Sequence record: OR532817.1
Strand: one strand, 5' to 3'
Length of the DNA: 64,000 nucleotides
Below are positions 21,267 through 51,720 of this stretch, piece by piece (position 1 is the stretch's first letter; each line of letters begins with the position of its first letter). A program made the position numbers and the translations under genes. The notes under the pieces were generated by a model. The model did no database searches. It was not told the DNA's origin and saw only the letters and a list, made by a program, of their open reading frames with translations.

Positions 21267-21674
21267 ATGGCAAAGAAAAAGAAAAAGATTGACAGAACAT
21301 TACGGCATCCTAAGTACAGAGTTCAATATCATGATAGTGAACAGATAGAAGTAGATTTGGGAGGTGGAAGTAGGTTAAAATATGCTAACAATGCATATGT
21401 GAATAATAAATTTGTATTAACATTGTATAAAAATTTCGAGTATCATTCAAGTAATGATCTTCTTGATTATACATTTATTAGTACTGAAGAAGAATTATTT
21501 CAGCATTCTTTGCTGTGTACTGTTGATATTGATTTTTCTGTACTGGTACAGTTACAGAAAGCTTTAAAGCATCAAATGTATCAATATATTTTTCCAAATA
21601 AACTGGAAATGATTAATATGAAGAATAGATATGTTTTGGATATTACTGGTACTGGGATTGAATTAGAAGAATGA
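21267..21674 (+). CDS. Family A protein (FQ motif)
   Basis: STEEELFQHSLL. Confidence 0.75.
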   Translation: MAKKKKKIDRTLRHPKYRVQYHDSEQIEVDLGGGSRLKYANNAYVNNKFVLTLYKNFEYHSSNDLLDYTFISTEEELFQHSLLCTVDIDFSVLVQLQKALKHQMYQYIFPNKLEMINMKNRYVLDITGTGIELEE

Positions 21675-21859
21675 AAACAATATCGGAATCTGAGTACAAT
21701 CAAATAGTTTCTGAATGTATTAGAAAACGCAATGGAAATTGTAATTTTGGTAATGCAAGAGGTAGAGAAATTTTACTTATTGCATTTTTAGATACAAATT
21801 TACAAGAGAGCTATTATCAAGAATATATTAAACATTTAATTCATAGTTTACACAAATGA
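21671..21859 (+). CDS. Family B microprotein
   Basis: EILLIAFLDTNLQESYYQEYIKHL. Confidence 0.75.
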   Translation: MKTISESEYNQIVSECIRKRNGNCNFGNARGREILLIAFLDTNLQESYYQEYIKHLIHSLHK

Positions 21860-22173
21860 AAATAAAAGAACATAAAAAAGTACGTATAGAGAGAATGGGT
21901 AAATTATATACTTTTAATTACAATAATAATGTTATATTTTACAGTACTATAATGAAACATTTCTATTCTAAGCACGGAGTAGTTCCTACATTTATAGATT
22001 TACCCAGTGATGAGTTATTCCAGCAATTATGTTCTTACGATGAATCAGAATTGGGATTATCTATATCTGAATTTGAAGGATTACAGATATTGTTTAAATT
22101 CAATGAAATTCCTAATTTGTGTTATGTAAACATACAAGATGGATACAGTTATATCTATGAAGTTTTTAACTGA
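21856..22173 (+). CDS. Family A-like protein
   Basis: DLPSDELFQQL. Confidence 0.7.
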   Translation: MKIKEHKKVRIERMGKLYTFNYNNNVIFYSTIMKHFYSKHGVVPTFIDLPSDELFQQLCSYDESELGLSISEFEGLQILFKFNEIPNLCYVNIQDGYSYIYEVFN

Positions 22174-22187
22174 GGTCGCGTACAGCA

Positions 22188-22528
22188 ATGAAAACTACTA
22201 AATTTGAATACAGAATTCAAGTATTTGATGAGGATATTTTGTGGTCTTACGAATATTATAAAAATGAGTACAAGAGTGAAGCGATAGATAAGGTTCTGAG
22301 AAAAATGATACGATTAAAGTACTGAATAATCATCTAATATTAGAATTTTTATAGAGAAGATACATGCAGGTTATTGTGTATTATACATCCTTAGAGATGA
22401 CAGAGGAATATGTATTTCAATTAAGTACAGTACATGAATATATTTCTGCTATTATAATGATTATGGATTTAAAAAAAGAATTAATCGCAAGATGCGTGTT
22501 CATGTACCTGATTTCAGTACTGAATTGA
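22188..22528 (+). pseudogene. Possibly fragmented Family A member (45-aa and 54-aa ORFs)
   Basis: ORF 22364-22528 has EEYVFQLSTV; its upstream frame is closed by TAG 22352-22354; no clear RBS. Confidence 0.35.
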
Positions 22529-22621
22529 GCATTGAGATATAAAATGTCTTGACATTGGCTTTTCTTTTTGCTATTATAATTATAAACCCGTATTATCCTT
22601 TACAAAGAGTAATAAAATAAA

Positions 22622-23266
22622 ATGACTACAAGTGAATTATCTGAACTGTTTGGGATTTTATCAGTACTGATGCCTAAGATTGAAAGTAATCCACATCATT
22701 TATTGAGTCCAAAAGCACAATCTATTTTCAGTATTGAAAAGCGAATGGATCTGGAATACGAGGAACTTTGTGCTCGTTTGAAAGCTATTGCAAATGATGA
22801 GATAATTCCAAAAGAATATCTTGTTAGTATCAATGAATTGAGTTCTTACACTCGTTGTGAAATCACTCGTCCTGAATATTATGATAGTGGTACTTGTAGT
22901 TATAAACGAGTATTAACAATGAAAGAAAATTCACATGATTTTAATGTAATTAATCTTACTGATGATGGTAAAGTGAAAGAAGTTATGTATCATCCTACAT
23001 CAGAAGAAATTATGATCAACAAAGGTGGTGTTTGGGGAAGTCGACATAAAATTAAAATTCCTAATTACAAAGACTATGATGATGTTGATGCTTGTATGTT
23101 CCAGTTAAGTACTGTAAAAGATTTTAGTACTGAAGAAGAAAATATTATGAAGTTCTTTATGTTCTTACAGAAGTTTAAAAGTTCACGAAAGCGTTTGCCT
23201 AAATTTAGTACAAACATTGAACTGATTTCATTATCTAAACTGCTGGAGTTGTATGACCAAAATTGA
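22622..23266 (+). CDS. Family A protein
   Basis: DACMFQLSTV; promoter TTGACA at about 22548. Confidence 0.8.
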   Translation: MTTSELSELFGILSVLMPKIESNPHHLLSPKAQSIFSIEKRMDLEYEELCARLKAIANDEIIPKEYLVSINELSSYTRCEITRPEYYDSGTCSYKRVLTMKENSHDFNVINLTDDGKVKEVMYHPTSEEIMINKGGVWGSRHKIKIPNYKDYDDVDACMFQLSTVKDFSTEEENIMKFFMFLQKFKSSRKRLPKFSTNIELISLSKLLELYDQN

Positions 23267-23534
23267 ATACTATTCAGTGCTGAATATTCAGGAAGTATGT
23301 AATGAATTATACTTCACTCCTTATACAGAAGTATTGCGTTCTGTACTACAATCACTACAGAAGGAATTCAATGCAAAGTACAAAGGAACTCCAGTACGAA
23401 CAAAAAACAATGAATTTGTCTATGAGACTGTAATTGATCATTATATTATATCGTTCATTGATTGTGTGTTCAAAACTGATGATATTGGATGGAACAGATA
23501 TTTTGATGAAACCGTTATGATCATTGGGAAATAA
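23253..23534 (+). CDS. Family C protein (about 95 aa)
   Basis: LQKEFNAKYKG; near-duplicate of 25550. Confidence 0.8.
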   Translation: MTKIEYYSVLNIQEVCNELYFTPYTEVLRSVLQSLQKEFNAKYKGTPVRTKNNEFVYETVIDHYIISFIDCVFKTDDIGWNRYFDETVMIIGK

Positions 23535-23539
23535 AAAAA

Positions 23540-23821
23540 ATGACTAAAGATGAATATAAATCTGTTTCTATTATTAGAAAAATGTGTGATTCTTTTTACA
23601 GAAATACACAATACGGTACTGCTATGCGTTCAGTACTGAATACGTTATCAAAAGATTTTACTCATAAGTATCATGGCCGAAAGATAAAAATTAATACTAT
23701 TAATGCAGAATATTACACAAAAATTAAAAAGTACAAGATTACATTAGGTGAATGTGATTTTCGTACTAACACCGGAATCAATGGTTCATTTTTTGGTGAT
23801 TATGTGACGCTATGTGATTAA
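23540..23821 (+). CDS. Family C protein
   Basis: MTKDEY...LSKDFTHKYHG. Confidence 0.8.
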   Translation: MTKDEYKSVSIIRKMCDSFYRNTQYGTAMRSVLNTLSKDFTHKYHGRKIKINTINAEYYTKIKKYKITLGECDFRTNTGINGSFFGDYVTLCD

Positions 23822-23890: not shown

Positions 23891-24142
23891 ATGAAACAAA
23901 TTTTTAAAACCATCTGGAATTCACTGTTTAGTAAAAATACCAGTACTGTTGATAGTACTGTTAGTACGGTTACTACCAATACACAAAGTACATACATTCC
24001 AGTATATAGTGATGAAAATCCATTCTATACAGAAGAAGAGAAGAAACAATGGATTGAGGATGAGATTCGTTTACGCAAAGAAGAAGCAGAGCGTATGAAA
24101 CTTGAAAAAAGTAATAAGAAATGCAACCAATGCAACAAATAA
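23891..24142 (+). CDS. Hypothetical protein
   Basis: RBS AAGGA; S/T-rich then charged. Confidence 0.7.
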   Translation: MKQIFKTIWNSLFSKNTSTVDSTVSTVTTNTQSTYIPVYSDENPFYTEEEKKQWIEDEIRLRKEEAERMKLEKSNKKCNQCNK

Positions 24143-25549: not shown

Positions 25550-25834
25550 ATGACCAAAAGTGAATACTATTCTGTACTGAATATTCAGGAAGCGTGCAAA
25601 GGTTTATACTTTACTCCTTATACTGAAGTTATGCGTTCTGTGTTACACTCATTACAGATGGAATTTAATGCAAAGTACAAAGGGACACCCATTTCCATAA
25701 AATGTTATAATGAAGATTTTGGTGTTTTAATTAATAGTTATAGTATAACATTTATTGTTTGTTATTTTGAAACATCGGGTTCTATAGCAGTGACAAGAAA
25801 ATATTTTGATTCTGATACAAAGATTAGGAAATAA
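25550..25834 (+). CDS. Family C protein
   Basis: Near-duplicate of 23253. Confidence 0.8.
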   Translation: MTKSEYYSVLNIQEACKGLYFTPYTEVMRSVLHSLQMEFNAKYKGTPISIKCYNEDFGVLINSYSITFIVCYFETSGSIAVTRKYFDSDTKIRK

Positions 25835-25894: not shown

Positions 25895-26170
25895 ATGACT
25901 GAACAAGAATACAAATGCACAACGCATGTAATCGGAGTATTAGGTGATATTGAATCAAAGTATCGCAGTACAATGCTTACTATCTTATCAATGCTACAAA
26001 CTGATTTTAATAAAAAGTACGCACAAAGAAAGGTACAACTAACTGTAGGTTCAGGTGTTAAAACCAAAACAATCAAAGGGTATTGTATTGGATTTAGATA
26101 TGTGTATTTTACTATTACCAAAGGATATAAAAGAGATCATTTCAATGAATTCACTACTTTGTGTTCATAA
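25895..26170 (+). CDS. Family C protein
   Basis: LQTDFNKKYAQ. Confidence 0.8.
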   Translation: MTEQEYKCTTHVIGVLGDIESKYRSTMLTILSMLQTDFNKKYAQRKVQLTVGSGVKTKTIKGYCIGFRYVYFTITKGYKRDHFNEFTTLCS

Positions 26171-26179: not shown

Positions 26180-26446
26180 ATGAAAAGAGATAAACATTAT
26201 AAACAAATTGAATTCATTTATAAACTCGCACGAAATAGTGATGCTTACACTTATATTTCTTATGAATCATATCTCAAAGAAGTTGTTGTTTTGTATCTTA
26301 AAAAGTACAAATCAAAAAAGGTTGATTCTGGTACTTACATCATAGACGATGTTAAATTTTTATACGGCGAGCTTCGTGTATACCAGAGAAGAGTAAGCGA
26401 CGGTATGCTTTTGTGGGATTCTATATGGAATACAAAAATAGATTAA
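26180..26446 (+). CDS. Hypothetical protein (Family C-like)
   Basis: RBS GAGGG; YLKKYK. Confidence 0.7.
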   Translation: MKRDKHYKQIEFIYKLARNSDAYTYISYESYLKEVVVLYLKKYKSKKVDSGTYIIDDVKFLYGELRVYQRRVSDGMLLWDSIWNTKID

Positions 26447-26448
26447 TT

Positions 26449-26877
26449 ATGAAAACATTAGAAGAATTAATTAGAATAAGTAAAAATATCATTTATATTA
26501 ACAATGTATTCAGTACAGGAAAAGGTCATCTTATTGTTGATGATGTTAGATACTTTTATTCTGAGTCTGCTCATATATGGTACAGTTCATTTTATGTTCG
26601 TGATTTTGAACCCGAGTGGGATTGTATTTCTTATTCGAGGGGTTTAAGTACAGTCACAACTATTTCTTCTATGAAGGAACATACTCACACACTCGATTGT
26701 TCAGAATTTGATTTAAGTGAAGAGATGCTTTTTCAGTACAGTACAATGTATTCCAGTACCGAACTGGAAGCTATATTCGTTAAAGTGTACCTGGATAAAT
26801 TCACTGATATAGATGAATTTTGTATAAATCTCTCACAATACCCTTCGTATTGCGAAAAACTTGGATTAATACCATGA
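26449..26877 (+). CDS. Family A protein
   Basis: SEEMLFQYSTMY. Confidence 0.8.
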   Translation: MKTLEELIRISKNIIYINNVFSTGKGHLIVDDVRYFYSESAHIWYSSFYVRDFEPEWDCISYSRGLSTVTTISSMKEHTHTLDCSEFDLSEEMLFQYSTMYSSTELEAIFVKVYLDKFTDIDEFCINLSQYPSYCEKLGLIP

Positions 26878-27290
26878 GTTACAGAAGTTCATTATTTTTT
26901 GCACAAAAGGTATACTACACCGTTCAGTGCTTTTATAATTCTGAATTTGATAATACAGTACTAAAAAAGACAGGAAATGACAGTGCATTTGATTACTACG
27001 ATTATCAGAATTTATTTTTTGGTTATCCGGTCTTCAATACTACACAGATGGATTGTCATATTTCTCTTGATTTTTCTTTTATGACATTCAATTCATATAA
27101 CACAGACTATATGTCACTCGATTCTGTGGTTAGATTAAATTCTGATAACATAGTGTTAATTCATAGTAGTGAGGATTATGATTTCTTTAGTAATTCTTAT
27201 ACTGAAAATGAATTGTTTGTTTGTACTGTATTTTCGTACCTAATTCTTAACAAATGTAAACCATTCTATCTGGATTTGAGTATAATTTAA
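26874..27290 (+). CDS. Hypothetical protein, paralog of 27912
   Basis: SLFFAQKVY...FSYL..KCKPFYLDLSII. Confidence 0.75.
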   Translation: MSYRSSLFFAQKVYYTVQCFYNSEFDNTVLKKTGNDSAFDYYDYQNLFFGYPVFNTTQMDCHISLDFSFMTFNSYNTDYMSLDSVVRLNSDNIVLIHSSEDYDFFSNSYTENELFVCTVFSYLILNKCKPFYLDLSII

Positions 27291-27309
27291 AGAGGGGATT
27301 TTCATTATC

Positions 27310-27912
27310 ATGCTAGAGAATTTTTATTCAAATTTAATGAAAGCTTTCCCTACAAAAGAGGAAGTTGGATTAGGCCATGTATCAGATTTGGATTATGATA
27401 TTTACGTTGCTATGGTAATTGTTGGTCAAGCAAAAAATGTTCATGAAGTACATGAACGATTTACAAAACTAGAGAATGAAAGAAATTATACAAATGAATT
27501 GAAATCTGAACCTGAAATACAAGGTAGATTGTTTATTGTAAAAAATACAAGAACATTAGAATTAATTTTGATACCTACTAAAGAAACATTTAATGAGATA
27601 TCAAAAACCGAAGAATATCTTTTGAATAATCATGGAATTTCTTATAAATCAAAAGACTGGATTATTGATACAGTACTGTACGTTTCTCGTAAAGACAGAG
27701 GATTAACGAGAGTACATGATTTATATTCTTCTGTTCTTAAAATTGCTACACCAAATGAATTTGGAATATTCAATTCAGAACAATATGATATAATCATGAA
27801 CTGTATTAATGATAAAATATCAAGATGTTATAATCGTTGTGTATATCCAAATGGATATCATAGTAATAAAAATTTTCACTACAATTACAATGAAATATGG
27901 AATAAAGTATAA
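27310..27912 (+). CDS. Hypothetical protein
   Basis: 200-aa ORF, RBS GAGGGG. Confidence 0.8.
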   Translation: MLENFYSNLMKAFPTKEEVGLGHVSDLDYDIYVAMVIVGQAKNVHEVHERFTKLENERNYTNELKSEPEIQGRLFIVKNTRTLELILIPTKETFNEISKTEEYLLNNHGISYKSKDWIIDTVLYVSRKDRGLTRVHDLYSSVLKIATPNEFGIFNSEQYDIIMNCINDKISRCYNRCVYPNGYHSNKNFHYNYNEIWNKV

Positions 27913-28307
27913 TGAACAACAACGAATCACTTTTTCTTGCTAAAAAGATATATAACACTGCACAACTTTTTTATAATTCAAGTTTCAACTGTACTGGATT
28001 TAAGAGAAGTTTTGTGGGGCTTGATTATGAATACAAATTTTCCAATTTAATTGTTTTCAGTACTGAAAATACATATGGCTGTTTCTTTTCTTTTAAAAAA
28101 AATATTATAATTTTTGATAATGAATTCGCCGGTATAATTGAATGTGAATACGAAGATGGAACACGTAATTATCTTTCCCGTATAATGAATTTACATCAAC
28201 AGTGCCAACCTGTGAATACAAAGGATAATATGTCAGTACTGACAATTTTTTCGTACTTAGCCCAGATGAAGTGTCAACCATTCTATATGGATTTACGCAT
28301 AATTTAG
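27912..28307 (+). CDS. Hypothetical protein, paralog of 26874
   Basis: SLFLAKKIY...FSYL..KCQPFYMDLRII. Confidence 0.75.
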   Translation: MNNNESLFLAKKIYNTAQLFYNSSFNCTGFKRSFVGLDYEYKFSNLIVFSTENTYGCFFSFKKNIIIFDNEFAGIIECEYEDGTRNYLSRIMNLHQQCQPVNTKDNMSVLTIFSYLAQMKCQPFYMDLRII

Positions 28308-28319
28308 GGGGTATATTTT

Positions 28320-28616
28320 GTGTTAAAAATTCACTGTCACAACGGTATATTTTTTTGTAACACTGCAATACATAACGGAAAGTTGATTTATCATAAAAGT
28401 GAGGATTCTTTTTATTATACCCATGTGAATTCTGAAAAAATGCACAAAATTATTGATTATTCAGGATTACAAGAGGATGAACTTTTCCAGATGCATTTAG
28501 TATATGATAAAGTACTTAATTTGGATTTTTACACTTTAACATATATTCAGACCAAAATGCGAGAATTATCAAAAATTTATACTGCTGATTTTAAGATTAT
28601 AACACCTGAAATATAA
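28320..28616 (+). CDS. Family A protein
   Basis: QEDELFQMHLVY. Confidence 0.75.
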   Translation: MLKIHCHNGIFFCNTAIHNGKLIYHKSEDSFYYTHVNSEKMHKIIDYSGLQEDELFQMHLVYDKVLNLDFYTLTYIQTKMRELSKIYTADFKIITPEI

Positions 28617-28617
28617 G

Positions 28618-28953
28618 ATGAATAAAAATATAAGAACCAATAATATTATGTGGTGCACTGTATATAAACTGATTTATACTACTTATGCTCTTATACGATT
28701 AGTTAGCAAACATAATACAAAAATCGATGTTTATTTCTATAATGACGGTACCAAAGAACATTACTTAACAGAGGGTAATGATATATATGAAATTCATGAT
28801 TTATCCTCTTTGAGCACAGAAGAACATTTCCAATTACTCACAGTATGGGATTATAAAACTGATATTGATTTTGTTATTTCTGCACATAAACGCATAGAGG
28901 AACTTAAAAAGGATGAGTTTTTCAATCGTGTCGATACAGTGATTGAATATTAA
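28618..28953 (+). CDS. Family A protein
   Basis: STEEHFQLLTVW. Confidence 0.75.
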   Translation: MNKNIRTNNIMWCTVYKLIYTTYALIRLVSKHNTKIDVYFYNDGTKEHYLTEGNDIYEIHDLSSLSTEEHFQLLTVWDYKTDIDFVISAHKRIEELKKDEFFNRVDTVIEY

Positions 28954-29120
28954 AAGAGCGTACAAAAAATGATTTATGATAAAAATGTTGAGTATATAAC
29001 CCAGTTCATAGTACTATCATACACCAGATATGGCAGTTCTGGTTCCAGGTATATTGATAGTATACTTAAACAACATATTGAGTTTAATGTTATCAATAAC
29101 AAGAAAGGGTTAATATAGAA

Positions 29121-29585
29121 ATGGTTTTTGATACGAGAGAAGGTGCACTCTTTTATGCAAATCAAATATGCAATTTAGTTTTGTATTACAAAAGTAATGA
29201 AAATTTATTAGATGAATATAAATGTTTGTATTCTAAAGTCGATGATGTATTAAGAATTTCTTTAGAAATAGAACACAAAAACCCATTCCCTGAATCAATT
29301 ATTGATTTTCAAGAAAAATATATTAATTATATTCCAGGTAAAGAATGTGAATTAATTCTTTCCGATGTATTTGGTCATAGTATCAAAATCAATCCCAGTG
29401 ACCAAAATGAAGAATTCAATACCAGTACAGAAGAAGGTTATTTCCAGAAGAGTACTATATACAATTCTGATGAATTGTTCTGCATTATTCTTTTTGAAAA
29501 TATAGTACGTAAAATTCCCTTTCAATTCTATATTGATTTAGAAACAATTAATGACATAATAAAAGAGAAAAATTATGCGATATAA
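29121..29585 (+). CDS. Family A protein
   Basis: STEEGYFQKSTIY. Confidence 0.8.
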   Translation: MVFDTREGALFYANQICNLVLYYKSNENLLDEYKCLYSKVDDVLRISLEIEHKNPFPESIIDFQEKYINYIPGKECELILSDVFGHSIKINPSDQNEEFNTSTEEGYFQKSTIYNSDELFCIILFENIVRKIPFQFYIDLETINDIIKEKNYAI

Positions 29586-29913
29586 AATATATAAAACCAA
29601 CCACCTGGTTGTAGCTGAGTACCTTTGTGATAATATGTTAGATATGTTCGAAAATGAACATGATTTTGTTTTAAATTTAAGTACTAAAAAATTTAAGTTG
29701 AACTATTATGGTTCACATGAATTATCTGAACAATATTCAGTTGAATTGCAAGATTGTACTCAGATGCAGGATGATGAATTGTTTCAGTACTCTTTGATTT
29801 TTGATTTTAATTTATTAAGTTTCAAGAATATTGTATTACTTCAGAAAGAAATGCTTACCATACAAGATGATGATACTCATGATACTAAAGAAATTAATTT
29901 TATTGACTTTTGA
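29575..29913 (+). CDS. Family A protein
   Basis: MQDDELFQYSLIFD. Confidence 0.8.
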   Translation: MRYKIYKTNHLVVAEYLCDNMLDMFENEHDFVLNLSTKKFKLNYYGSHELSEQYSVELQDCTQMQDDELFQYSLIFDFNLLSFKNIVLLQKEMLTIQDDDTHDTKEINFIDF

Positions 29914-29973
29914 ATGTATATGTGATAGCATATGTTGTATGGGTGATACAAAACCATAAAAGGGGAATATATA

Positions 29974-30348
29974 GTGCAGACAAATCAAGAAATACAAATA
30001 AAATTAAAAATTAATAATTATTTTAATAAAGTTGTTAGTGCTTCGTATAATGAAGAAGTTTTGTACGAAATAAATTATTCCATGAATTGTTCATCCTTTT
30101 CATTTCGTGAGTATAATGGTATAACTTTAATTAGATCTTATGTAATTCCAGTGATTGATTATACTGAAATGCAAGATGATGAATTGTTCCAGTACTCTTT
30201 AATATACGATCTGGAACATGTTATCCCCTTTGACTCTATGGTTGAATTACAGGGTATTATGAAATCATGTACACAATTAGACCAATTGCAGGGTGGTATT
30301 GAATACACATTTAGTACAATGAATAAGAAGAATTATTATGTACAATGA
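29974..30348 (+). CDS. Family A protein
   Basis: MQDDELFQYSLIYD. Confidence 0.8.
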   Translation: MQTNQEIQIKLKINNYFNKVVSASYNEEVLYEINYSMNCSSFSFREYNGITLIRSYVIPVIDYTEMQDDELFQYSLIYDLEHVIPFDSMVELQGIMKSCTQLDQLQGGIEYTFSTMNKKNYYVQ

Positions 30349-39965: not shown

Positions 39966-39973
39966 AAAATATT

Positions 39974-42019: not shown

Positions 42020-42516
42020 TGAATAGTGAATATAAAAAATCTAAACACATCACGGATTCGTTGGTAAAATTAATCAAATCAATACTGAATGGTGCAATCG
42101 ATGGACGACTAATCTATGATGACAGTGATGACACTATTAATGTTACATTAAAATCCAACAAAAAGAGTTATAGGAATTTATTTTCTACCGGGTGGTATTA
42201 TAGTGAGTATTTACTTGAAGACAACTCTTCATTGGGATATTCAGAAACTCATTATTTTGCTTTTGACCCAAATGATAGTTCTCTTGTTGTGACTATTCGA
42301 CAATGCAATGGTAAAAGAACAAGAGAGAAACTTAGTACAACTGGACTTAATATAGATACAGAAGAAGAGTGGTTCCAGTACAGTACTTTATATAATGATA
42401 CTGAACTATTTTCTATTATGTTATGGTGTGCATTTAAGAAAGAAAACTTCCCATCATGTTTAGTAGAATTTTCAGAATTTTTCAAATATTTGGAAGAAAC
42501 AAATGCTATTATCTGA
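42019..42516 (+). CDS. Family A protein
   Basis: TEEEWFQYSTLY. Confidence 0.8.
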   Translation: MNSEYKKSKHITDSLVKLIKSILNGAIDGRLIYDDSDDTINVTLKSNKKSYRNLFSTGWYYSEYLLEDNSSLGYSETHYFAFDPNDSSLVVTIRQCNGKRTREKLSTTGLNIDTEEEWFQYSTLYNDTELFSIMLWCAFKKENFPSCLVEFSEFFKYLEETNAII

Positions 42517-43084
42517 TATCAAATCTTTTAGTACTGAACTGGATGTAATTAAAAATATCATTATTAAGATGATTGAAATTCACAGAACTAAAAGACGATA
42601 TACGTCTTTTAGCGAAGAAGGTTTTGAACTTGAGCGTGGATTGTTTCATATTGATTTGATGATTAGTGATTATGAATGTATTTTTAGTTTAAGAAACGAT
42701 TCGTCTCAAATGAAAAATACTGGGATTGATTTATCCATTATTCCACATCATCAAATTATACTTGGTGGTTCTGGAAACGTATACATTTCACCATTCGAAT
42801 CTGGATTTAGTAGAAGTATAGCTTTACCAAAAAATGAAGGTAGTGAACCTTACATTTTAATTAACGATGATGCACTTGATGAATGGAAATTTCAGTTAAG
42901 CACATTATATGATCCAATAATAGTTGATATAATCAACCTAGAAGAAGAACTAAGAGAGAACTTAGCCTCTTTGGAGCACAACAATAATGTATATGCACCT
43001 TTGTTATTGGTTGTTGATTTAAAATGTTTAGAAAAGAAAAAACACGATTTGAATTCTATGCTAGAATTTTTAGAGAACATATAA
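42503..43084 (+). CDS. Family A protein
   Basis: LDEWKFQLSTLY. Confidence 0.8.
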   Translation: MLLSDIKSFSTELDVIKNIIIKMIEIHRTKRRYTSFSEEGFELERGLFHIDLMISDYECIFSLRNDSSQMKNTGIDLSIIPHHQIILGGSGNVYISPFESGFSRSIALPKNEGSEPYILINDDALDEWKFQLSTLYDPIIVDIINLEEELRENLASLEHNNNVYAPLLLVVDLKCLEKKKHDLNSMLEFLENI

Positions 43085-43087
43085 AAC

Positions 43088-43696
43088 ATGAAATTAGAAT
43101 ATTTCCCAAATTTAGAATACAAACATTGTATTGCTTATTCAATGTTTGTGGAAGATTTAATTAACGCATTACATGATCCAGAAATACGAAGAGAATGTAG
43201 AATTATAAGAATAGAAAATGATAGATTTTATATCAACACTGGAATTAGAAAAATAGATCTTGATATATTAAGTGTGGATACATCCGCTACACCAACCTTG
43301 ATTTCTTCCAGAGTTGGTAATTTCGAATTTTACTGGACTCACTGTTATGAATTCAATAAAGATTCTAAACATGATTTTATGATAGATGGTGATTTGTGCG
43401 AAAAAATTAAGTACTGTCATGACTACACAGAAGAAATGTTCTTTCAAAACAGCTTATTATACAAAAACTGTGATTTGTTTTATATCATATTATTCAATTA
43501 TTTAAAATGTAATTTAAATCATTCATTCTGTATGGCATCTGCACCCATCCCTGAAGATTTTTTTAAATTAATTCCAAATTTACTTTACATTGCTACAGAA
43601 AAGGGGTATTATGGTGATCTGTTAGAGTTGATGAAAAATATTCATCCAAATAACAACGATAAAAGTTCATATCTATCAGGATTTAGCAATCTATGA
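43088..43696 (+). CDS. Family A protein
   Basis: TEEMFFQNSLLY. Confidence 0.8.
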   Translation: MKLEYFPNLEYKHCIAYSMFVEDLINALHDPEIRRECRIIRIENDRFYINTGIRKIDLDILSVDTSATPTLISSRVGNFEFYWTHCYEFNKDSKHDFMIDGDLCEKIKYCHDYTEEMFFQNSLLYKNCDLFYIILFNYLKCNLNHSFCMASAPIPEDFFKLIPNLLYIATEKGYYGDLLELMKNIHPNNNDKSSYLSGFSNL

Positions 43697-44256
43697 CATA
43701 CGAAGAATACAAAAAGACAATACCAGTACTCGCTGAAATTGTTTCATTACTAAAAAATCATCTAAGTAAAAGAACCATATACAACGATAGATTCTTCACC
43801 TTACCCAAATCCAATTTTTATATAAAACAAATCAATGATGCTGATATTGACATAAGAATTTCAAAAAATAGTGATTCTATTATTCGCGTTGCAAAAGAAT
43901 CTCAGTGTTTTGATGGAGAGATTCCTATGTTACTTCGTCAGTTCGGTGATGTATATTGTTCATCCAGAAAACACCCAGGGTACATTAAAATATATTCAAG
44001 TGAAAGTGACATAGATTTACTGGATGTTGAATGCCCAGAAGAGCAATTATTTCAATATAGTACAATTCTTTCTAATATAGATCTTATCGTACTTGAACTT
44101 GAGTTAGAACTTCAAAAAGTACTTGACGAAAATGTTTACTGTGTAATTACATTATTCTATGATAATGATTACTATAGTGAATGTGCTTCATACAATGATT
44201 ATGTAAATCTACGAGATGATTTAAAAGATGAAAAAAGAACATGGGAACATTATTAA
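43693..44256 (+). CDS. Family A protein
   Basis: PEEQLFQYSTIL. Confidence 0.8.
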   Translation: MTYEEYKKTIPVLAEIVSLLKNHLSKRTIYNDRFFTLPKSNFYIKQINDADIDIRISKNSDSIIRVAKESQCFDGEIPMLLRQFGDVYCSSRKHPGYIKIYSSESDIDLLDVECPEEQLFQYSTILSNIDLIVLELELELQKVLDENVYCVITLFYDNDYYSECASYNDYVNLRDDLKDEKRTWEHY

Positions 44257-44812
44257 GAACTTAAAAGTTATTAAAGAATTAAGCACTGCTATGATTTTGT
44301 TGTACAAAAATACAGACAAAATTAATGCTGATAATTATATTCTAAGTACTACCAGATTAAATCCATACGAAAATGGAACATTGTACTTGAGAACAAAAGC
44401 ATCTCAAAATATCATTGGAATTATGAATGAATCAGTTTGCCTGGAAGAATATGCATACAAAGATGAAGAGGTACCTGGTAATTACAGGGTTATTATACGA
44501 GATTCGGCATTCTTCTTATGTAGTCCGATGAATCCATTTTTCAATAAAATATATGCTGATTTTAATTATACAAATGGTGTTGAAACTTTTCCTATTCCCA
44601 GTGAAGATACATGGGAAGAAGAGATGTTTCAACTATCATTAGTAGTACCAAATATGGTATGTTCCGAAGTACTGGAATTATATAAAGAAATACACAATAA
44701 TATTGAAAGTCATTTTTATATTTCATATGAATATGAAAATTATGATACCACATTATTAAAAGATGCATTAAATGACGTTAAAAAATTTATCAAGCACTAC
44801 ATCAACAAATGA
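44228..44812 (+). CDS. Family A protein
   Basis: WEEEMFQLSLVV. Confidence 0.8.
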   Translation: MKKEHGNIIKNLKVIKELSTAMILLYKNTDKINADNYILSTTRLNPYENGTLYLRTKASQNIIGIMNESVCLEEYAYKDEEVPGNYRVIIRDSAFFLCSPMNPFFNKIYADFNYTNGVETFPIPSEDTWEEEMFQLSLVVPNMVCSEVLELYKEIHNNIESHFYISYEYENYDTTLLKDALNDVKKFIKHYINK

Positions 44813-45350
44813 TACTGAAATGTACTTATTGTACAAAAATATTTTACTTGAATTAAAAAGATTATTGCATACTGATAATGTACGCGATAATTATCTACAT
44901 CAAGATATAAATGGTGAAATTTATTGTATAATTTCTGATGGTAAAATCGCATTATATGCTAATTCCGAAAATATAGCATTCACTTATGTTTTATTTGCTT
45001 ATTCGTTTAATTCACCAAATTACGTATCAGAAAAATATAGAGTAGAATATGATTCATATGTATACTTTGATCGTGATAATTCAACAAATGAATATATGAT
45101 TAATCACGAAACAAATAATATCATCCCATTGATTAAAGAAAATGAGTTGAGTTCAGATGAATTAGAAAGTTTATTATTCCAACATAATACACTGTATTCA
45201 GATGAAGATAAATTTTGTATTTGGATGGATTATTATATCAGAGACTACATCGAAGATGGATATTATTTCTGTGTAAACTACAACAGACTAAATGAATTCA
45301 GTACTGACATATATGAAAATATTCTATTGGAATTAAAGAAATATGATTGA
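44772..45350 (+). CDS. Family A protein
   Basis: LESLLFQHNTLY; true start may be downstream. Confidence 0.75.
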   Translation: MTLKNLSSTTSTNDTEMYLLYKNILLELKRLLHTDNVRDNYLHQDINGEIYCIISDGKIALYANSENIAFTYVLFAYSFNSPNYVSEKYRVEYDSYVYFDRDNSTNEYMINHETNNIIPLIKENELSSDELESLLFQHNTLYSDEDKFCIWMDYYIRDYIEDGYYFCVNYNRLNEFSTDIYENILLELKKYD

Positions 45351-45954
45351 ATTAAAATTTAAAATACAAGAACTAAAAGAACTGGTAATTAATTTAAAGA
45401 ATGTAAATGATAAATTCCATCTCTCAGAAAATTTCATGATTTATATTCCGGGTACCGAATCAACACTCATTCATGAAATGTCAACAAAAGGAATATATTC
45501 CAATATTACATTGAAATCAAAAGATTACAAAACTAATATCTGTTACAACACTATCTCTTTAATCAGGAGTTCAGATCCCTCTGAAGAACGTATCAGGAAA
45601 TCTAAAACAGTAGGTTCAATTTATAGTAGTTCATGTAATATATATTCTTTATCCGATAATACTAAAATGGAGATTGGTATATATGAAAACTATCATAGAA
45701 AGTGTGATACCAGTGAAAATGGAACTATTGAATTACCTGATTATGTAAAAGATTCTGATGAATTTGAAGCATTATTATTTCAATACAGTACTGAGAGTGA
45801 TATTAAGTACAACAGATTATTAAAAATGCGTATCATACAAGAAATATATGATGTACTTCAATATGAAGAAATATCAATCGATGATACTTTATTTGATTTG
45901 GATTCAAATGATTTGAAAACAATTATACAGGAATTGAAATTAAAATTATGCTAA
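45343..45954 (+). CDS. Family A protein
   Basis: FEALLFQYSTES. Confidence 0.8.
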   Translation: MIELKFKIQELKELVINLKNVNDKFHLSENFMIYIPGTESTLIHEMSTKGIYSNITLKSKDYKTNICYNTISLIRSSDPSEERIRKSKTVGSIYSSSCNIYSLSDNTKMEIGIYENYHRKCDTSENGTIELPDYVKDSDEFEALLFQYSTESDIKYNRLLKMRIIQEIYDVLQYEEISIDDTLFDLDSNDLKTIIQELKLKLC

Positions 45955-46511
45955 CATTGTCAGAAATTCTGGAATACGATAATAAAATTATCAATCTCTT
46001 GGGTGATATATCCTTTGAATTCAACAAAAAAGAAGATAAAAACAACAATAAAGCCACTATACTGAAAGTAAATGATAGTGAATTAGTTGTATTAGAAAAT
46101 AATCTTCATTTTTATTCTGTTGTACTTAAAGTGTATAATGGTATGTCAGAAACTCCGTGGTATATGGTGAAAAACACAGATGATTATGATACATTTCGTG
46201 GTATTAAACCATTCATCAACGAGTATGGTATTTTTTGTACTGCAAATGATTACGATGTATTATATGATGAATACGATCAATTCGGTACTGTTCATAACGT
46301 ATTCACAGAAGAACAATATTCCTGTATAGAAAGTACTGCTTTTCAGTTAAGTACAGAGTTTGATTTACAAGTAGTAAGAGCATTAGCAATGCAAACCAAT
46401 TTGTATTACAACAAAAGACACTATCAAATAATGTGTAATACAAAAATCCAGGATCATTTATATAATCCAAAATTAATTTTAAATCTAGAAAAATATCTGG
46501 AAACACTATGA
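45948..46511 (+). CDS. Family A protein
   Basis: IESTAFQLSTEF. Confidence 0.8.
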   Translation: MLTLSEILEYDNKIINLLGDISFEFNKKEDKNNNKATILKVNDSELVVLENNLHFYSVVLKVYNGMSETPWYMVKNTDDYDTFRGIKPFINEYGIFCTANDYDVLYDEYDQFGTVHNVFTEEQYSCIESTAFQLSTEFDLQVVRALAMQTNLYYNKRHYQIMCNTKIQDHLYNPKLILNLEKYLETL

Positions 46512-46999
46512 AAGAAATTATTGAATTAATAGAATTGATGCAGTCAAGTATAAGTTCATGTAAACTTGCAACCGGTGAACATAATTTGAATGCTGATTTT
46601 GATTTAGTAGTCAATAATCAAAAGAAATGTATTCACTTGATTAAAAAATCCAGTACTAAAGCAATCAAACATACAGCACTCATGATAGCTTCTTCACATC
46701 CTGCTAAAAAATATAATTCAAATATTGCTAATATAAGTTCACTGTACAAACCAGAAAGTACATCTTCATATATCAGTTCAATTAAAAGTGAATTAGATTT
46801 TCATAAATGCACTTTGGCTTCTTATGAAGAATTAGAATTTCAGTACAGTACGGTAATTACACGAAGTGATATTTTTATAATTCAATGCTTGTTATATTCA
46901 ATTGATTTTAAAGATATTGTGTACATGACAAATGATTTTATGAAATATAATTATATTGAAATACTCAGATCATTAAAGGACAAATTATGCCAAAATTAG
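46508..46999 (+). CDS. Family A protein
   Basis: YEELEFQYSTVI. Confidence 0.8.
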   Translation: MKEIIELIELMQSSISSCKLATGEHNLNADFDLVVNNQKKCIHLIKKSSTKAIKHTALMIASSHPAKKYNSNIANISSLYKPESTSSYISSIKSELDFHKCTLASYEELEFQYSTVITRSDIFIIQCLLYSIDFKDIVYMTNDFMKYNYIEILRSLKDKLCQN

Positions 47000-47577
47000 A
47001 TGCACAGTACTGTAATAAATTACTGAATGCATTGATTACTATACAAAAGAATATAAAAAAAGAAAAGAGTATTCAAATTTACTATAATGATAGTTATATT
47101 CTTGTACAATGCAACCCAGATGGTAATTATGTAGAGTTCAGTTTAAAGAAAGAAGATGTTCATGATTGTATTAGTATTGATTTGCATGAAGCAACACCAC
47201 ATCAAAGTTTAAAAAATATTATTAAAGCATATAAAAGAACTACTTATGCATTTGACACGTTAGTTCACAGATATAAAACATTTTATTGTATGTTTGATAC
47301 AGACGAATATGATTTCAATTTAGTAGGATTTGATGAAAACATCATTAGCATTCCTTATGATTTTGATGATGAATTATATTTTCAGTACAGTACTTTATAT
47401 AGTTTACCACCACAGAGTGATCTTGAGCTTCACAAAAGTATTCATAAAAAATGCAAAAATGAACTACCAAATAAAAGTGTAGTTAGAATTTCATATCTAT
47501 CCATCGAATTAGATCAACAAGAAATGGATGAAATTCTGGAATCTTTGTATTCATTGGTTCCTGTGTTTAAACATTAA
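46987..47577 (+). CDS. Family A protein
   Basis: DDELYFQYSTLY. Confidence 0.8.
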   Translation: MPKLDAQYCNKLLNALITIQKNIKKEKSIQIYYNDSYILVQCNPDGNYVEFSLKKEDVHDCISIDLHEATPHQSLKNIIKAYKRTTYAFDTLVHRYKTFYCMFDTDEYDFNLVGFDENIISIPYDFDDELYFQYSTLYSLPPQSDLELHKSIHKKCKNELPNKSVVRISYLSIELDQQEMDEILESLYSLVPVFKH

Positions 47578-47600
47578 AATCCCCCTTGACTGGGGTTTTT
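47576..47600 (+). terminator. Terminator overlapping a sigma70-like promoter
   Basis: AAAATCCCC-CTTGACT-GGGGTTTTTTT; TTGACT followed by TATAAT. Confidence 0.65.
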
Positions 47601-47633
47601 TTATTTGTTATAATAAAAAATAGAGAATATAAA

Positions 47634-48260
47634 ATGAAAAAAGAATCATATAACATACTTCGTGTATGTGAAAATTTAATATTGTTGTTACTGGCTTATA
47701 AGAAAAATATAAATTTAAGCAAGAAAATTCTTGATTATCATATTAATATTAATATTACTTGTAGTAATCATATTTCAATATATTTAAATATTAGTAATTT
47801 TGGTTCTATTACAACAACATCATCCAACATCATTTCATTTAATGCTGATAATATTCAACCAGTTGAATTAAATTTACCAATTGAAGATATTAAAGGTGAA
47901 ATGATTTATTTTGATGACCGATATTGTGAATATGATGTTAATAGTCCAAATTTAGTCGGAGCATATTTAAAAAAATATGATCCTGATATTGATGGATACA
48001 ATGAAACAAACTGCCATGAAGTAATGGAAAGGACGTATGATGAATGGGCTTTTCAGTACAGTACATTATATGATTTTGTTCCAGATAAAGAAGATTATTT
48101 TTACTTGAAAAATTTCATGCATAAATTGGGTAACGAATTCGATTATACATATTCAAATATTTTATTTGAATCAAAAGTGGATATTGTGAATCTAAAATCC
48201 GCAATTGATATATGTACCGAAACTGTTAAAAGGAAGATTGATGAAAACTCCGATATTTGA
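47634..48260 (+). CDS. Family A protein
   Basis: YDEWAFQYSTLY; start moved to 47634. Confidence 0.8.
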   Translation: MKKESYNILRVCENLILLLLAYKKNINLSKKILDYHININITCSNHISIYLNISNFGSITTTSSNIISFNADNIQPVELNLPIEDIKGEMIYFDDRYCEYDVNSPNLVGAYLKKYDPDIDGYNETNCHEVMERTYDEWAFQYSTLYDFVPDKEDYFYLKNFMHKLGNEFDYTYSNILFESKVDIVNLKSAIDICTETVKRKIDENSDI

Positions 48261-48756
48261 AAAATCAAAGGAATATGCACAACGCATATCTGATTGTATT
48301 GAACTTATTCAATCAATGAGAAAAACTTTCTACATAAATCACAAAGGTACTTTTAGATATCAGCATGAAACTAATGGAATTATTACCATGAGCAAAGGTA
48401 AGTCACCTTTTAGTGAGGTTATATTAACATATGTACCAGATAATATCCATATTTCATTCAATGATAGTTATCTAATAGAAATATCAAATTATATTCCAGT
48501 ACTAGATTATACAGAAGAAACCGAATTTCAATATAGTACTTTGTATAATAATGAAGAATTATTAATGCATTATATATATTCTATTCTATGGAATTTGAAC
48601 ATCAAAGGGAAAATTCATATAAACCCAAAAATAAATTTAAGAACATATACAATGGCATTGAAAAATATGTATAGTTATTTTCAGGACACAAATTATAATT
48701 TATATAAAGAACTGTGTCATAAAACATTCAAATCATCGGAAATAAACTACTTATGA
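48241..48756 (+). CDS. Family A protein
   Basis: TEETEFQYSTLY. Confidence 0.8.
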   Translation: MKTPIFEKSKEYAQRISDCIELIQSMRKTFYINHKGTFRYQHETNGIITMSKGKSPFSEVILTYVPDNIHISFNDSYLIEISNYIPVLDYTEETEFQYSTLYNNEELLMHYIYSILWNLNIKGKIHINPKINLRTYTMALKNMYSYFQDTNYNLYKELCHKTFKSSEINYL

Positions 48757-49337
48757 TTGAGAGATATGATCTTAGTACGAGAATATTAAATGAAGCACTC
48801 AAAAAAGTGCCATCAATTGTGGAAAAACATAGTAAATTATATTCTAAGTACAATAGTAATAGTACATTCAATGTTGGTATTAAAAATCAGAATTATGAAA
48901 CTAACATTGATGATAGTTCCATTGAATATGGTTCAGCAAATGGTTCTTCATGGACAATTGAATTTGACAATTCACTCCATGATTATTATAACTGGACACC
49001 AGAATATAATGAATTTAGCTTTAATACATCATCTGTTGCTTTTTTGGTTAGTAGTGAACATATGTTGTACGCTCTTTATGATTTTAATACTGAAATTTTT
49101 ATAATTGAAGACACCGATTTATCTTTTGAAGTAAATTGCATAGATTCGCTACGTGAAATGATTTTTACATTACAATTGGAGTACTCAGATATTATTGAGA
49201 CTGAATTACTATGGAGTATGCTATCACCGATGATTGAGTTTAAAAAGCTGTTGACACCTGACAAAGATGTTGCTATTATATTTGAACCATATAGACAAGA
49301 GTTTTTAGAATTAAACCCAGAGATACCAAACACATGA
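48753..49337 (+). CDS. Hypothetical protein (divergent Family A?)
   Basis: LREMIFTLQLEY. Confidence 0.75.
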   Translation: MIERYDLSTRILNEALKKVPSIVEKHSKLYSKYNSNSTFNVGIKNQNYETNIDDSSIEYGSANGSSWTIEFDNSLHDYYNWTPEYNEFSFNTSSVAFLVSSEHMLYALYDFNTEIFIIEDTDLSFEVNCIDSLREMIFTLQLEYSDIIETELLWSMLSPMIEFKKLLTPDKDVAIIFEPYRQEFLELNPEIPNT

Positions 49338-49744
49338 TTCTATATCACTGTAGTACTGTAAAAATTGACAGCTTTTATATCCCCTTTGGTGGCTTACATT
49401 TTGGTGGTATTAATAGTGCTTTAGAAGCTGCGTTACGTAAGCTGAGAAGCCCACGAAACACGTTGGATCACAAGGAGATACATATCCATAAATGTTTCGT
49501 GGAACTCGGTAAAACACAGCACAGTGAGGATTTGGGTGGTGAGGATTCGTGGAGAGCGGTGATCGATGAATGCTCACGATTAGGATTTAATTCAGTACAA
49601 TATAAGAATGTATACGAACCTGATTCAGTACCTAGCTATATGATTTGGGACGCCAGTAGAGTAAAAATCATAGAAGTGGATTGTATTCATATGGATGACG
49701 CCGAACAAATGCTGGAAGAATTTTATGATTCACATTGTTCTTAA
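49334..49744 (+). CDS. ART-PolyVal-like ADP-ribosyltransferase-fold protein (putative)
   Basis: LYH.S...GGLHFG...AA.R...D.G...F.SVQYKN.YE...SYMIWD...VKI pattern. Confidence 0.55.
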   Translation: MILYHCSTVKIDSFYIPFGGLHFGGINSALEAALRKLRSPRNTLDHKEIHIHKCFVELGKTQHSEDLGGEDSWRAVIDECSRLGFNSVQYKNVYEPDSVPSYMIWDASRVKIIEVDCIHMDDAEQMLEEFYDSHCS

Positions 49745-49764
49745 ACTAACACAGGTAACGATTC

Positions 49765-50319
49765 ATGTCAGAACCAATAGAATATTTTAAAGCATGTTCT
49801 CGTTTGGTTAATTCAATTTCAAAGGATTTTTTATCAAGAAAACCAAAAGAGTATATTGATAACGTACTTGGATATAATTTTATATTATATTATGGTTTTA
49901 GTTCATTAAGAATTTCAGTTGATGATGAAAATGAAACACCAGTACTTACAATTTTTAATGTTGATTACATCACATGCAACCCAGAAGTATTTCATGAACC
50001 ACATTGGTCTCTACATAATATAGTAGTTAACAGTGGTATTCAATGTGGTTTGGTGAAAAAAATTGACCACCGTTTTTATTCAGGTGATGAACTCATCGAT
50101 CATGAGATTGGTTTTAGTTCTAAGTTATTCTCTAATACTTTAACTGAAGAAGAATTTTTCCAGTACAGTACAGTACTGAAATTAAACACATTGGAATATT
50201 ATCTGGAATGGAATAAAACTATAATGCAAGACAATACAAATGAAAAAGTTGTTTGGCATTGGTATTATGGTGATTTCATTTCAAAAGAAGCTATTGATGA
50301 ATTATCGAAAAGAATATAA
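49765..50319 (+). CDS. Family A protein
   Basis: TEEEFFQYSTVL. Confidence 0.8.
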   Translation: MSEPIEYFKACSRLVNSISKDFLSRKPKEYIDNVLGYNFILYYGFSSLRISVDDENETPVLTIFNVDYITCNPEVFHEPHWSLHNIVVNSGIQCGLVKKIDHRFYSGDELIDHEIGFSSKLFSNTLTEEEFFQYSTVLKLNTLEYYLEWNKTIMQDNTNEKVVWHWYYGDFISKEAIDELSKRI

Positions 50320-50332
50320 TAAGGATTAAAAA

Positions 50333-50821
50333 ATGATGCTTGACATTATCGGAAATTTAGATATAGTTAATCAAATCATTCAATCAGCAATTGATGATAT
50401 TAAGAAGAAGGAGATTGAGGTACGATGGAATTTCTTATCGTCTGATATTGGATACCTTGTTGATATTAGTGAACCAACAAAGAAACAAATGGTTGTACAA
50501 ATCAATGCACTAAGTAACAGGCAATCTCTATGTAAATTTTATATTACAAAGAATGGGATAATTCTCAGATATAATAATAAATTGATGTTTGAATACAAAA
50601 ACAGTACTAAAACATTCATTACAAATCTATTTGATGAACCATTTTATATTGATGATTTAGAAAGTACTTTCTTTACTCAAAGATGTTTAAATTCGTTTGG
50701 TTCACTGGATAATATAGTATTTGATTATGATATCATGACTGAAACATTAAAGAAAACACAGGATTTATATTATGCCTACTTGGTGTTTACCCAAAAACGA
50801 GAAAATGCTAACACAGCCTGA
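50333..50821 (+). CDS. Hypothetical protein
   Basis: RBS AAGGA. Confidence 0.75.
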   Translation: MMLDIIGNLDIVNQIIQSAIDDIKKKEIEVRWNFLSSDIGYLVDISEPTKKQMVVQINALSNRQSLCKFYITKNGIILRYNNKLMFEYKNSTKTFITNLFDEPFYIDDLESTFFTQRCLNSFGSLDNIVFDYDIMTETLKKTQDLYYAYLVFTQKRENANTA

Positions 50822-51251
50822 CGATAGCGTATATAAGTGTATTGAGCATTTCGATTATTTTATTAATTCAAACAAAGAATTTATTGTGGTCGATTGTATA
50901 CCATTGTATTTCATTAAATCCGATTCAAATACAATCAAAGAATTTAATATGTACTATGGTAGTGAATTTATATCAATTAAATTAATCAATAAATATTTGA
51001 AAAATTCTTATTCAATTGAAAGTTATTACAATGGAATATTTTTACTCGGTATTAGTAATGAGTACATCAATTCAGTACTATTAAAATCAAACACAAATGA
51101 ACCAGTTTATGCTGATCGAGAAGCATTCAATGAAATCGATTTCTTCCAGTATACATGTGGTGATGCTTATATACCATTACACACCAATACGATGTGTTTA
51201 GTTAAAGATAAATTGTTGGAGATTGGAAATGATTTCAAAAAATACTATTAA
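50805..51251 (+). CDS. Family A-like protein
   Basis: NEIDFFQYTC. Confidence 0.7.
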   Translation: MLTQPDDSVYKCIEHFDYFINSNKEFIVVDCIPLYFIKSDSNTIKEFNMYYGSEFISIKLINKYLKNSYSIESYYNGIFLLGISNEYINSVLLKSNTNEPVYADREAFNEIDFFQYTCGDAYIPLHTNTMCLVKDKLLEIGNDFKKYY

Positions 51252-51720
51252 AACTGGAATGCAATGTTTGATTGATTATTTTGAAAATCCAAAATCATAC
51301 ACTGAGGTACTGAAAGGTGATCACACATTTCATTACTACGGTGATGATATTCAGATTATAGTTGGATTTCATACATTAAAACTTTGTATTATTGATAATA
51401 AAAATTCAAATTGTTTTATTTTCTCTCCAGTAAAAATGCGAGAAGATGATATTTGCACCGAATTCGGGACTATTGTTGCTGTAATTGATGATGATGGTAG
51501 AAAAACACATGTATACGATACACTATTCATTGAAAGTTCTACTTTGTTTCAATTGAGTTTAATTCATGATATTAATATTGATGGATTGGATATATTGATG
51601 TATAAGTATAGTGAATTACTTGAATTACTAGGGAAATCTAAAATTAATCACAATACTAAATACATTAAAGAAGCATGTGATAATTTATCAAAAGCTCACG
51701 TGCAATACTCTAACGAATAA
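51223..51720 (+). CDS. Family A protein
   Basis: ESSTLFQLSLIH. Confidence 0.75.
   Translation: MEMISKNTIKTGMQCLIDYFENPKSYTEVLKGDHTFHYYGDDIQIIVGFHTLKLCIIDNKNSNCFIFSPVKMREDDICTEFGTIVAVIDDDGRKTHVYDTLFIESSTLFQLSLIHDINIDGLDILMYKYSELLELLGKSKINHNTKYIKEACDNLSKAHVQYSNE

Follow-up and report, generated by a model that had tools for sequence, protein, structure and literature searches.

A 64,000-nucleotide stretch of sequence record OR532817.1 (hereafter the window) carries, from 21267 to 51720, an array of small genes whose products share a motif of the form EExxFQxS. The family comprises 33 intact plus-strand genes and one remnant, with two further borderline open reading frames (ORFs); the encoded proteins are small (98–224 amino acids) and all are annotated as hypothetical protein. 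It would seem reasonably likely, though well short of certain, that these genes form an ancient multigene family of the RaK2-like phages in which one protein scaffold has been diversified into a repertoire of host-binding proteins made early in infection; the structural part of this statement can be made more firmly than the whole. An earlier description of the same DNA (the original prediction) had proposed an array of about 35 members spanning 21267–51720, in which unrelated N-terminal domains were joined to a constant C-terminal module that could dock on a common partner. Both the size and the extent of the array hold, the first member starting at 21267 and the last ending at 51720, but the evidence points to single-domain paralogues that share an orphan fold and have diverged in the ordinary way, though to an extreme degree, rather than to a two-module architecture. 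Positions 39000–47000 of the window are 100% identical to Klebsiella phage RCIP0023 (OR532817.1, 350 kb) and 97–98% identical to Muenster, K64-1, KP13-7 and RaK2 of the genus Alcyoneusvirus.

Membership was defined by profile. While a loose regular expression finds the motif in 14 ORFs of the window, an iterative hidden Markov model (HMM) search confined to ORFs of the window started with 13 motif-bearing seeds, reached 25 and then 27 sequences, and converged at 29. Twelve non-seed ORFs were recovered in the first round, and the converged set consists of 28 full-length members and one 54-residue fragment. An HMM of the motif had been suggested as a check on the array, and it recovers one family with FQ invariant in the converged set. 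Enriching the profile with database relatives added 22622–23266, 26820–27290 and 27912–28307 (E 1e-5 to 3e-4; cut-off E<1e-3), and in a further round the RaK2 orthologues of 45948–46511 and 51223–51720 scored at E ~1e-5. Profile–profile comparison gave no signal for 48753–49337, 49334–49744, 50333–50821, 50772–51251 or 51763–52239. Members also match phrog_9317, phrog_12674 and about ten smaller PHROGs, with E values for the window members of between 1e-8 and 1e-48. The window array is one real family, and includes ORFs that are matched by profiles built without them. Judged by these matches, phrog_9317, phrog_12674 and the smaller PHROGs are likewise one family split into pieces. In PHROGs no function is given and the pieces are not joined as a superfamily, nor are the motif, the fold or the copy number described there.

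At the level of BLASTP the N-terminal parts do look unrelated, as had been claimed, with only one of 406 N-terminal pairs matching at E<0.01 compared with 112 of the 406 C-terminal pairs. A leave-one-out profile of the N-terminal parts alone scores above every shuffle for no more than about 8 of 27 members, a result that by itself settles relatedness neither way. Several observations nevertheless speak against the two-part architecture. Nearly the whole of the 134-position family profile is matched by the members and by about 100 database relatives, and the PHROG matches also cover nearly the full length of the members. The genes at 26413–26877, 29121–29585, 40485–40976 and 40930–41457 join one cluster through intermediate relatives (links with at least 75% coverage and E<1e-10). 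When only the N-terminal parts are compared, by global profile–profile alignment, about nine members are connected at E 1e-6 to 1e-4; the groups linked in this way (E 2e-6 to 2e-4) are those of 26413–26877, 37696–38091, 38075–38473, 38629–39051, 39038–39433 and 39417–39965, together with several groups from phage 121Q and from metagenomes. Conserved columns are also visible in the N-terminal half of a 114-sequence alignment, where position 15 is hydrophobic in 110 of 110 sequences and position 80 in 100%, and where aromatic residues occupy positions 60 (Tyr or Phe in 80 of 103), 79 (78 of 110) and 82 (112 of 114), with a proline at position 84 in 60 of 87. A second motif, hydrophobic-x-[YF]-x-P, is present in 13 of the 33 window N-terminal parts against 5.9 in shuffles (maximum 11), and in nine members it sits 26–36 residues before the proposed module; the alignment column that answers to it is aromatic in 112 of 114 sequences. 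The short upstream forms align only from about position 40 of the profile onwards, and for this reason are probably missing the helix at the N-terminus together with the first strands.

The AlphaFold models lead to the same view. Two members were modelled with AlphaFold2, both from the family-wide alignment. The first, 42019–42516, is predicted as one compact domain with a mean local confidence (pLDDT) of 87.3 and a predicted template modelling score (pTM) of 0.83, the block-mean pLDDT reaching 89–96 around the motif. A helix at residues 3–23 is followed by six strands between 31 and 106, the motif helix (115–122), a helix at 127–141, a strand at 147–150 and a last helix at 151–160. Models in BFVD, which were built independently by others, match this one over its full length with template modelling (TM) scores of 0.45–0.65, the closest being a 163-residue paralogue (TM 0.65 at 20% identity), with proteins of RaK2, 121Q, SP27 and GAP32 at 0.45–0.6. 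The second member, 44772–45350, was picked for its lack of an N-terminal profile signal and for its atypical motif, ESLLFQHN. Helices and strands follow one another in its model as they do in the first, though with lower confidence (pLDDT 64, pTM 0.56), and the best match of this model among viral structures is the orthologue of the first modelled protein (probability 0.96, TM 0.42–0.46 over 180 columns). On these models the members would adopt one single-domain α/β fold, in which an N-terminal amphipathic helix leads into a β-meander of five to seven strands, followed by the motif helix, a longer helix, a strand and a final helix.

A single fold is likely for the medium-sized members and, on moderate support from the models, probable for the long distal ones. 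The N-terminal helix, the β-sheet and the loops appear to have diverged almost beyond recognition by sequence, and the long forms appear to carry insertions. Modelling of members had been put forward as a check, and a full-length fold common to all had been named as the outcome that would speak for ordinary divergent paralogues; that outcome is now supported for the medium members and moderately so for the long distal ones. Since the evidence favours divergence within a single domain, the description as a variable domain plus a constant module stands only in part: the array is large and the motif region is the better conserved, but neither the unrelated N-terminal domains nor the portable docking module is borne out.

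No match to the family fold was found among solved and cellular structures. The top rows returned by Foldseek were frataxin/CyaY and p32/MAM33, none of them significant, and the Swiss-Prot models gave only noise-level CyaY rows over residues 1–45. Both frataxin/CyaY and p32/MAM33 are acidic and loosely alike in the order of their elements (N-terminal helix, antiparallel sheet, C-terminal helices), but the superposition is not significant. The AlphaFold DB clusters contained one match, of 147 residues, which is probably a member of the family, and a feature search of the ESM Atlas gave scores of 0.84–0.86, within the chance range. Pfam and NCBIfam hold no credible family for the members, and a profile search against PDB sequences gave no match. 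The comparison with poxvirus ankyrin/F-box proteins made in the original prediction does not hold for the features that define those proteins: a Pfam search of 10 members found no ankyrin or other repeat domain, no F-box and no PRANC, and the models show one α/β domain. The C-terminal F-box/PRANC helical motif of such adaptors binds Skp1 or another common partner; in the first model and in the alignment the motif helix belongs to the core of the domain.

The motif itself is far from a chance occurrence. The pattern [DE][DE]xxFQx[STHNL] is found 27 times in the plus-strand ORFs of the window against 0.14 in residue shuffles (maximum 3), and FQx[ST] 33 times against 3.75. It lies 41–84 residues from the C-terminus, mostly 43–60, in line with the 40–60 first reported; an F(Y/S)(I/M)DL element does occur downstream, but in only about 7–9 of 34 members, for which 'often' was too strong. 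In the aligned family, drawn from several phage genera, the Phe and the Gln are invariant in 114 of 114 sequences, the Glu pair is present in 95–101 and the Ser in 108, at a mean column identity of only 9%. Two members of the window, 26820–27290 and 27912–28307, have Phe-Val in place of Phe-Gln but keep the remaining sequence pattern. In the modelled member 42019–42516 the core motif, EEEWFQYSTLY (42361–42393, plus strand), corresponds to residues 115–125, that is, helix 115–122 and the following turn. Glu115 and Glu116 are placed in the first turn of this helix, and the residue before it, at position 114, is Thr or Ser in 83 of the 114 sequences, which suggests a helix N-cap. Positions 118, 119, 121, 124 and 125 are hydrophobic in 75–100% of sequences. 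This pattern fits a largely buried, central helix in the model, from which (S/T)EExxFQxS(T/L)xY would be N-capped and serve as the keystone of the fold, not as a tag that can be detached.

A softened form of the adaptor library has to be considered at this point, in which the invariant Glu-Glu, Phe-Gln and Ser positions would form a shared surface site that docks on one partner or ligand (a host protease, chaperone or polymerase, or a phage factor) while the variable remainder recruits targets. The near-invariance of these residues in a family with so little overall identity is what such a site would predict; Glu116 and Gln120, being four residues apart, lie on the same face of the helix, which could be exposed, and the C-terminal part is more constrained than the N-terminal part. 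Yet the motif is set in a structured helix amid hydrophobic positions and is not a linear tag, no domain boundary sets it apart, the two members without FQ retain the rest of the pattern, and Pfam shows neither F-box nor PRANC nor any other sign of an adaptor. A homodimer prediction for 42019–42516 (score 0.00) bears on pairing neither way, and virion or capsid partners are unlikely from the RaK2 mass spectrometry described below. We regard this explanation as possible but unlikely. Its most developed form, in which an exposed Glu-Glu/Phe-Gln/Ser site plugs some 34 paralogues into one host or phage machine (a protease, a chaperone or a transcription complex) while the β-sheet and the N-terminal helix capture different host proteins, would seem quite unlikely; were it true, the array would be an adaptor library of a phage, built on a novel fold and equivalent, in prokaryotes, to the F-box/BTB families of viruses.

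In about a third of the members the motif reads E-x-x-Y-F-Q-(G/S/Y), as in the EEGYFQGS of 38629–39051 and 40485–40976. The recognition site of the tobacco etch virus (TEV) NIa protease is ENLYFQ|G/S. This likeness is probably a coincidence, because the segment is modelled as a structured helix, although it could matter in practice when family proteins carry TEV-cleavable tags. Were the motif instead a processing site of the 3C/NIa type (E-x-x-Y-x-Q|G/S), cleavage would free the C-terminal 45–60 residues. The EEGYFQGS members and the EELYFQYS or DENYFQNS of relatives would suit such a site, as would the invariant Gln, but the helix that holds the motif is modelled with confidence and is part of the domain, the residue after the Gln is mostly Tyr, Leu or Asn, and RaK2 virions are without these proteins. 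To our knowledge RaK2-like phages have no 3C-like protease, although no whole-genome scan was made for one, and we consider processing of this kind very improbable. A prohead-protease site was also considered. The T4-type enzyme cleaves after Glu, but no consistent L/I-x-E context was found: the residues before the Glu pair vary (LSE, LTE, STE, NTE, CTE and others), giving no consistent Leu or Ile at P3, and this reading was set aside.

Searched exhaustively with the family profile, 1.84 billion cluster representatives yielded 104 matches at E<1e-3; bar one spurious repeat ORF these are all 68–210 residues long, they carry no fused domains and almost all contain the motif. The exception, P0022 (773 residues), is a 13-fold tandem-repeat ORF (MYRVTFQHPLILQDPVFLCIALLSS...) that reaches E 2e-10 through repeated weak matches and was rejected as a false positive. 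A word-indexed protein search with the profile returned mostly close orthologues, all in near relatives of RCIP0023, and the more distant members came to light only in the exhaustive search. The named relatives are hypothetical proteins of Escherichia jumbo phages or of ~350-kb contigs labelled E. coli, the remainder being metagenomic, and tblastn located orthologues in 29 Escherichia, 2 Salmonella and 9 Klebsiella records. By profile at E<1e-3 at least 32 copies are detected in the corresponding stretch of RaK2, and at least 34 in 40 kb of 121Q. The family is restricted to the RaK2-like jumbo phages and is older than the split of these genera. One metagenome contig, SRR30815946_997 (35.7 kb), holds at least 22 members in 20 kb with 25–45% identity to the window copies, so that the RaK2-like clade extends beyond the phages that have been isolated.

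Genes that lie close together in the window resemble each other more than genes far apart (Spearman −0.17, permutation p 0.0025), and reciprocal best hits between the window and 121Q are collinear (rho 0.85, p 0.0016). Orthologues are 94% identical to RaK2 in their N-terminal and 97% in their C-terminal parts, values that fall to 39 and 52% for distant orthologues, and comparison of RCIP0023 with RaK2 gives a pooled ratio of nonsynonymous to synonymous substitution (dN/dS) of 0.32 in the N-terminal parts and 0.15 in the C-terminal parts. These comparisons indicate that the members are real genes of an old tandem expansion, under purifying selection and not hypervariable.

Paralogues in these phages have been mentioned before, each time in one sentence: about 10% of RaK2 products were noted to be paralogues (PMC3622015), and '22 paralogous ORFs' were counted in phage CBB (PMC5259590). 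These probably include genes of the present family; the genomes are the same, but no family, motif, structure or position was defined. Beyond such one-line mentions the literature that was searched contained no description of the family and no transcriptomes of RaK2-like phages, and Iyer et al. (2021) do not mention it.

The location of the array is in keeping with early expression. In phage fEgEco12 the physical ends and direct terminal repeats of 20,993 bp have been confirmed by restriction mapping (PMC13070987), and the orthologue of 43088–43696 is found by tblastn at 47.9 kb in that genome; the array therefore starts immediately inside the left terminal repeat. The equivalent region was regarded as early host-takeover genes in the paper on CBB (PMC5259590). 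The G+C content drops from 0.34–0.39 in the first 20 kb of the window to 0.26–0.30 over 20–52 kb, the array being its most AT-rich part. All family ORFs are on the plus strand and tightly packed, many starts overlapping the preceding stop, in an arrangement of a few long operons. Strong sigma-70-like sites lie in the rare intergenic gaps at 21191, 22549, 37089 and 47586, and terminator-like hairpins at 21170, 47576, 51723 and 52361. From this layout the family proteins would be made early, from host-type promoters.

Evidence on the virion comes from the literature on the orthologous phage RaK2, which is 97% identical. Tandem mass spectrometry (MS/MS) identified 54 virion proteins (RaK2 Table S3), none of them from ORF362–440 (gp362–440), the family region. 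Virion proteomics had been named as a way of checking the original prediction, and these data supply it; with no family member among the 54 proteins they argue against a role in capsid loading, and a capsid-loading or scaffold partner is contradicted for RaK2.

The proteins are also mostly acidic, with a median isoelectric point (pI) of 4.9 against 6.5 for neighbouring non-members and net charges down to −18. Charge of this order, small single-domain proteins and an early-type gene position might be expected of nucleic-acid mimics or decoys, which in the manner of Ocr and ArdA would pass for DNA or RNA, or would titrate a class of DNA-binding or defence proteins of the host, the many copies providing dose or breadth. 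The structure searches found the fold to be unlike any known DNA mimic, however, and several members are neutral or basic (46508–46999 has a pI of 7.6 and 48205–48756 of 8.6). A need for dose would moreover not keep at least 30 anciently diverged orthologue lines in the same order, and mimicry seems an improbable explanation.

In the reading that we prefer, the family would be a cytoplasmic repertoire of binders or inhibitors, the diversified surface of each paralogue being directed at a different host or defence target; a constant core with diversified surfaces would fit such a repertoire. An analogy may be drawn with the multigene families of large eukaryotic DNA viruses. The MGF110/360/505 families of African swine fever virus and the Bcl-2-like and ankyrin/PRANC families of poxviruses consist of tens of tandem diverged paralogues near a genome end, are absent from virions and combine a conserved structural core with diversified surfaces and presumed host interaction. 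The phage array resembles them in its tandem diverged copies near a genome end, its absence from RaK2 virions, its layout of core and surface and its presumed interaction with the host. It differs in having no sequence or fold relationship to them, in being built on one small domain and not on repeats plus an F-box, and in belonging to a bacterial virus. Among phages, SPO1 gp37–60, the T5 pre-early genes and the T4 early ORFs are small early host-takeover genes, most of them without an assigned function, beside a terminal repeat with host-type promoters; those clusters hold many unrelated genes, whereas the present array contains at least 30 copies of one fold.

Several observations weigh against this preferred reading. 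The pooled dN/dS shows no sign of an arms race. The invariance of the Phe and Gln and the near-invariance of the Glu pair exceed what a hydrophobic core usually needs and hint at a shared functional site. Profile–profile comparison leaves 367 of 378 N-terminal group pairs below 20% probability. Confidence in the second model is only moderate and both models come from the family-wide alignment, which makes the shared fold of the long distal members less firmly supported. Sites of the sigma-70 type are no more frequent in this AT-rich DNA than in shuffles, and the RNA-labelled runs with this sequence are wastewater metagenomes, which cannot show expression timing.

Although the finding is descriptive, the family accounts for about 6% of the genes of RCIP0023 and for a comparable or higher proportion in the coliphages and Salmonella phages related to it, and joining the PHROG fragments into one family makes these 350-kb genomes simpler to annotate. 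Should the members be binders that serve host takeover or anti-defence, they would constitute a large untapped set of inhibitors against enterobacterial proteins, of relevance because phages of the RaK2/K64-1 type are candidates for therapy against Klebsiella.

The array falls into several groups, all on the plus strand. The first member (21267–21674, 135 residues, motif TEEELFQHS) follows the hairpin at 21170–21202 and a promoter-like site at 21191–21219. Further along lies the broken remnant (22364–22528), the frameshifted C-terminal third of RaK2 ORF364. In RaK2 this ORF is an intact 175-residue member, of which RCIP0023 keeps only the last third (about 50 codons; window 21660–22530), the 5′ two thirds being replaced by ~700 bp of unrelated DNA with ORFs at 21671–21859 and 21856–22173. 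A diverged member with the sequence MFQLST (22622–23266, 214 residues) has a strong sigma-70-like site just upstream at 22549–22577. The upstream cluster (26413–30348) has eight members, 26413–26877, 26820–27290, 27912–28307, 28320–28616, 28618–28953, 29121–29585, 29575–29913 and 29974–30348, among them short forms of 98–124 residues and both of the FQ-less proteins, with a non-member at 27310–27912. An isolated short member (33441–33776, 111 residues, SEEEEFQYS) has beside it a borderline member at 33778–34311 (hhalign E 5e-4).

The main tandem block of 19 members extends over 37696–47577, with start and stop codons that overlap or abut, a promoter-like site upstream at 37089–37116 and a closing terminator-like hairpin at 47576–47599; from its beginning to its end the proteins lengthen from 131 to about 200 residues. 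It encloses two ORFs outside the family, 38430–38651 and 45343–45954, the latter borderline (profile–profile E 2e-3). The distal block (47586–51720) has four members, 47586–48260, 48205–48756, 49765–50319 and 51223–51720, interspersed with the ORFs at 48753–49337, 49334–49744, 50333–50821 and 50772–51251, which the family profile does not detect, and is followed by a terminator-like hairpin at 51723–51739. Protein size climbs along the array, from 98–135 residues in most upstream members through 131–182 at 37.7–41.5 kb to 163–224 from 41.4 kb onwards, and related copies therefore cluster by size class.

At the junction of the two blocks the hairpin at 47576–47599 overlaps a near-consensus sigma-70-like promoter at 47586–47614 (TTGACT, a 17-bp spacer, TATAAT and a TG extension), and this pair is predicted to split the array into two transcription units. 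The TTG start given by the ORF finder for 47586–48260 lies within the promoter, so that the true start is probably the ATG ~48 nucleotides downstream (~47634), as annotated in RaK2. Hairpins of AGTACT/GTACT repeats are also present inside the array, at 23941–23960 and 50158–50181 on the minus strand (CAGTACTATCAACAGTACTG and TTTCAGTACTGTACTGTACTGGAA). A second, unrelated family of small paralogues (~90 residues), without resemblance to the FQ proteins, is interspersed among the upstream members at 23253–23534, 23540–23821, 25550–25834, 25895–26170, 32040–32312 and 32297–32608; its proteins match one another by BLASTP at E<1e-5 and have 4–12 relatives in RaK2, 121Q and metagenome loci.

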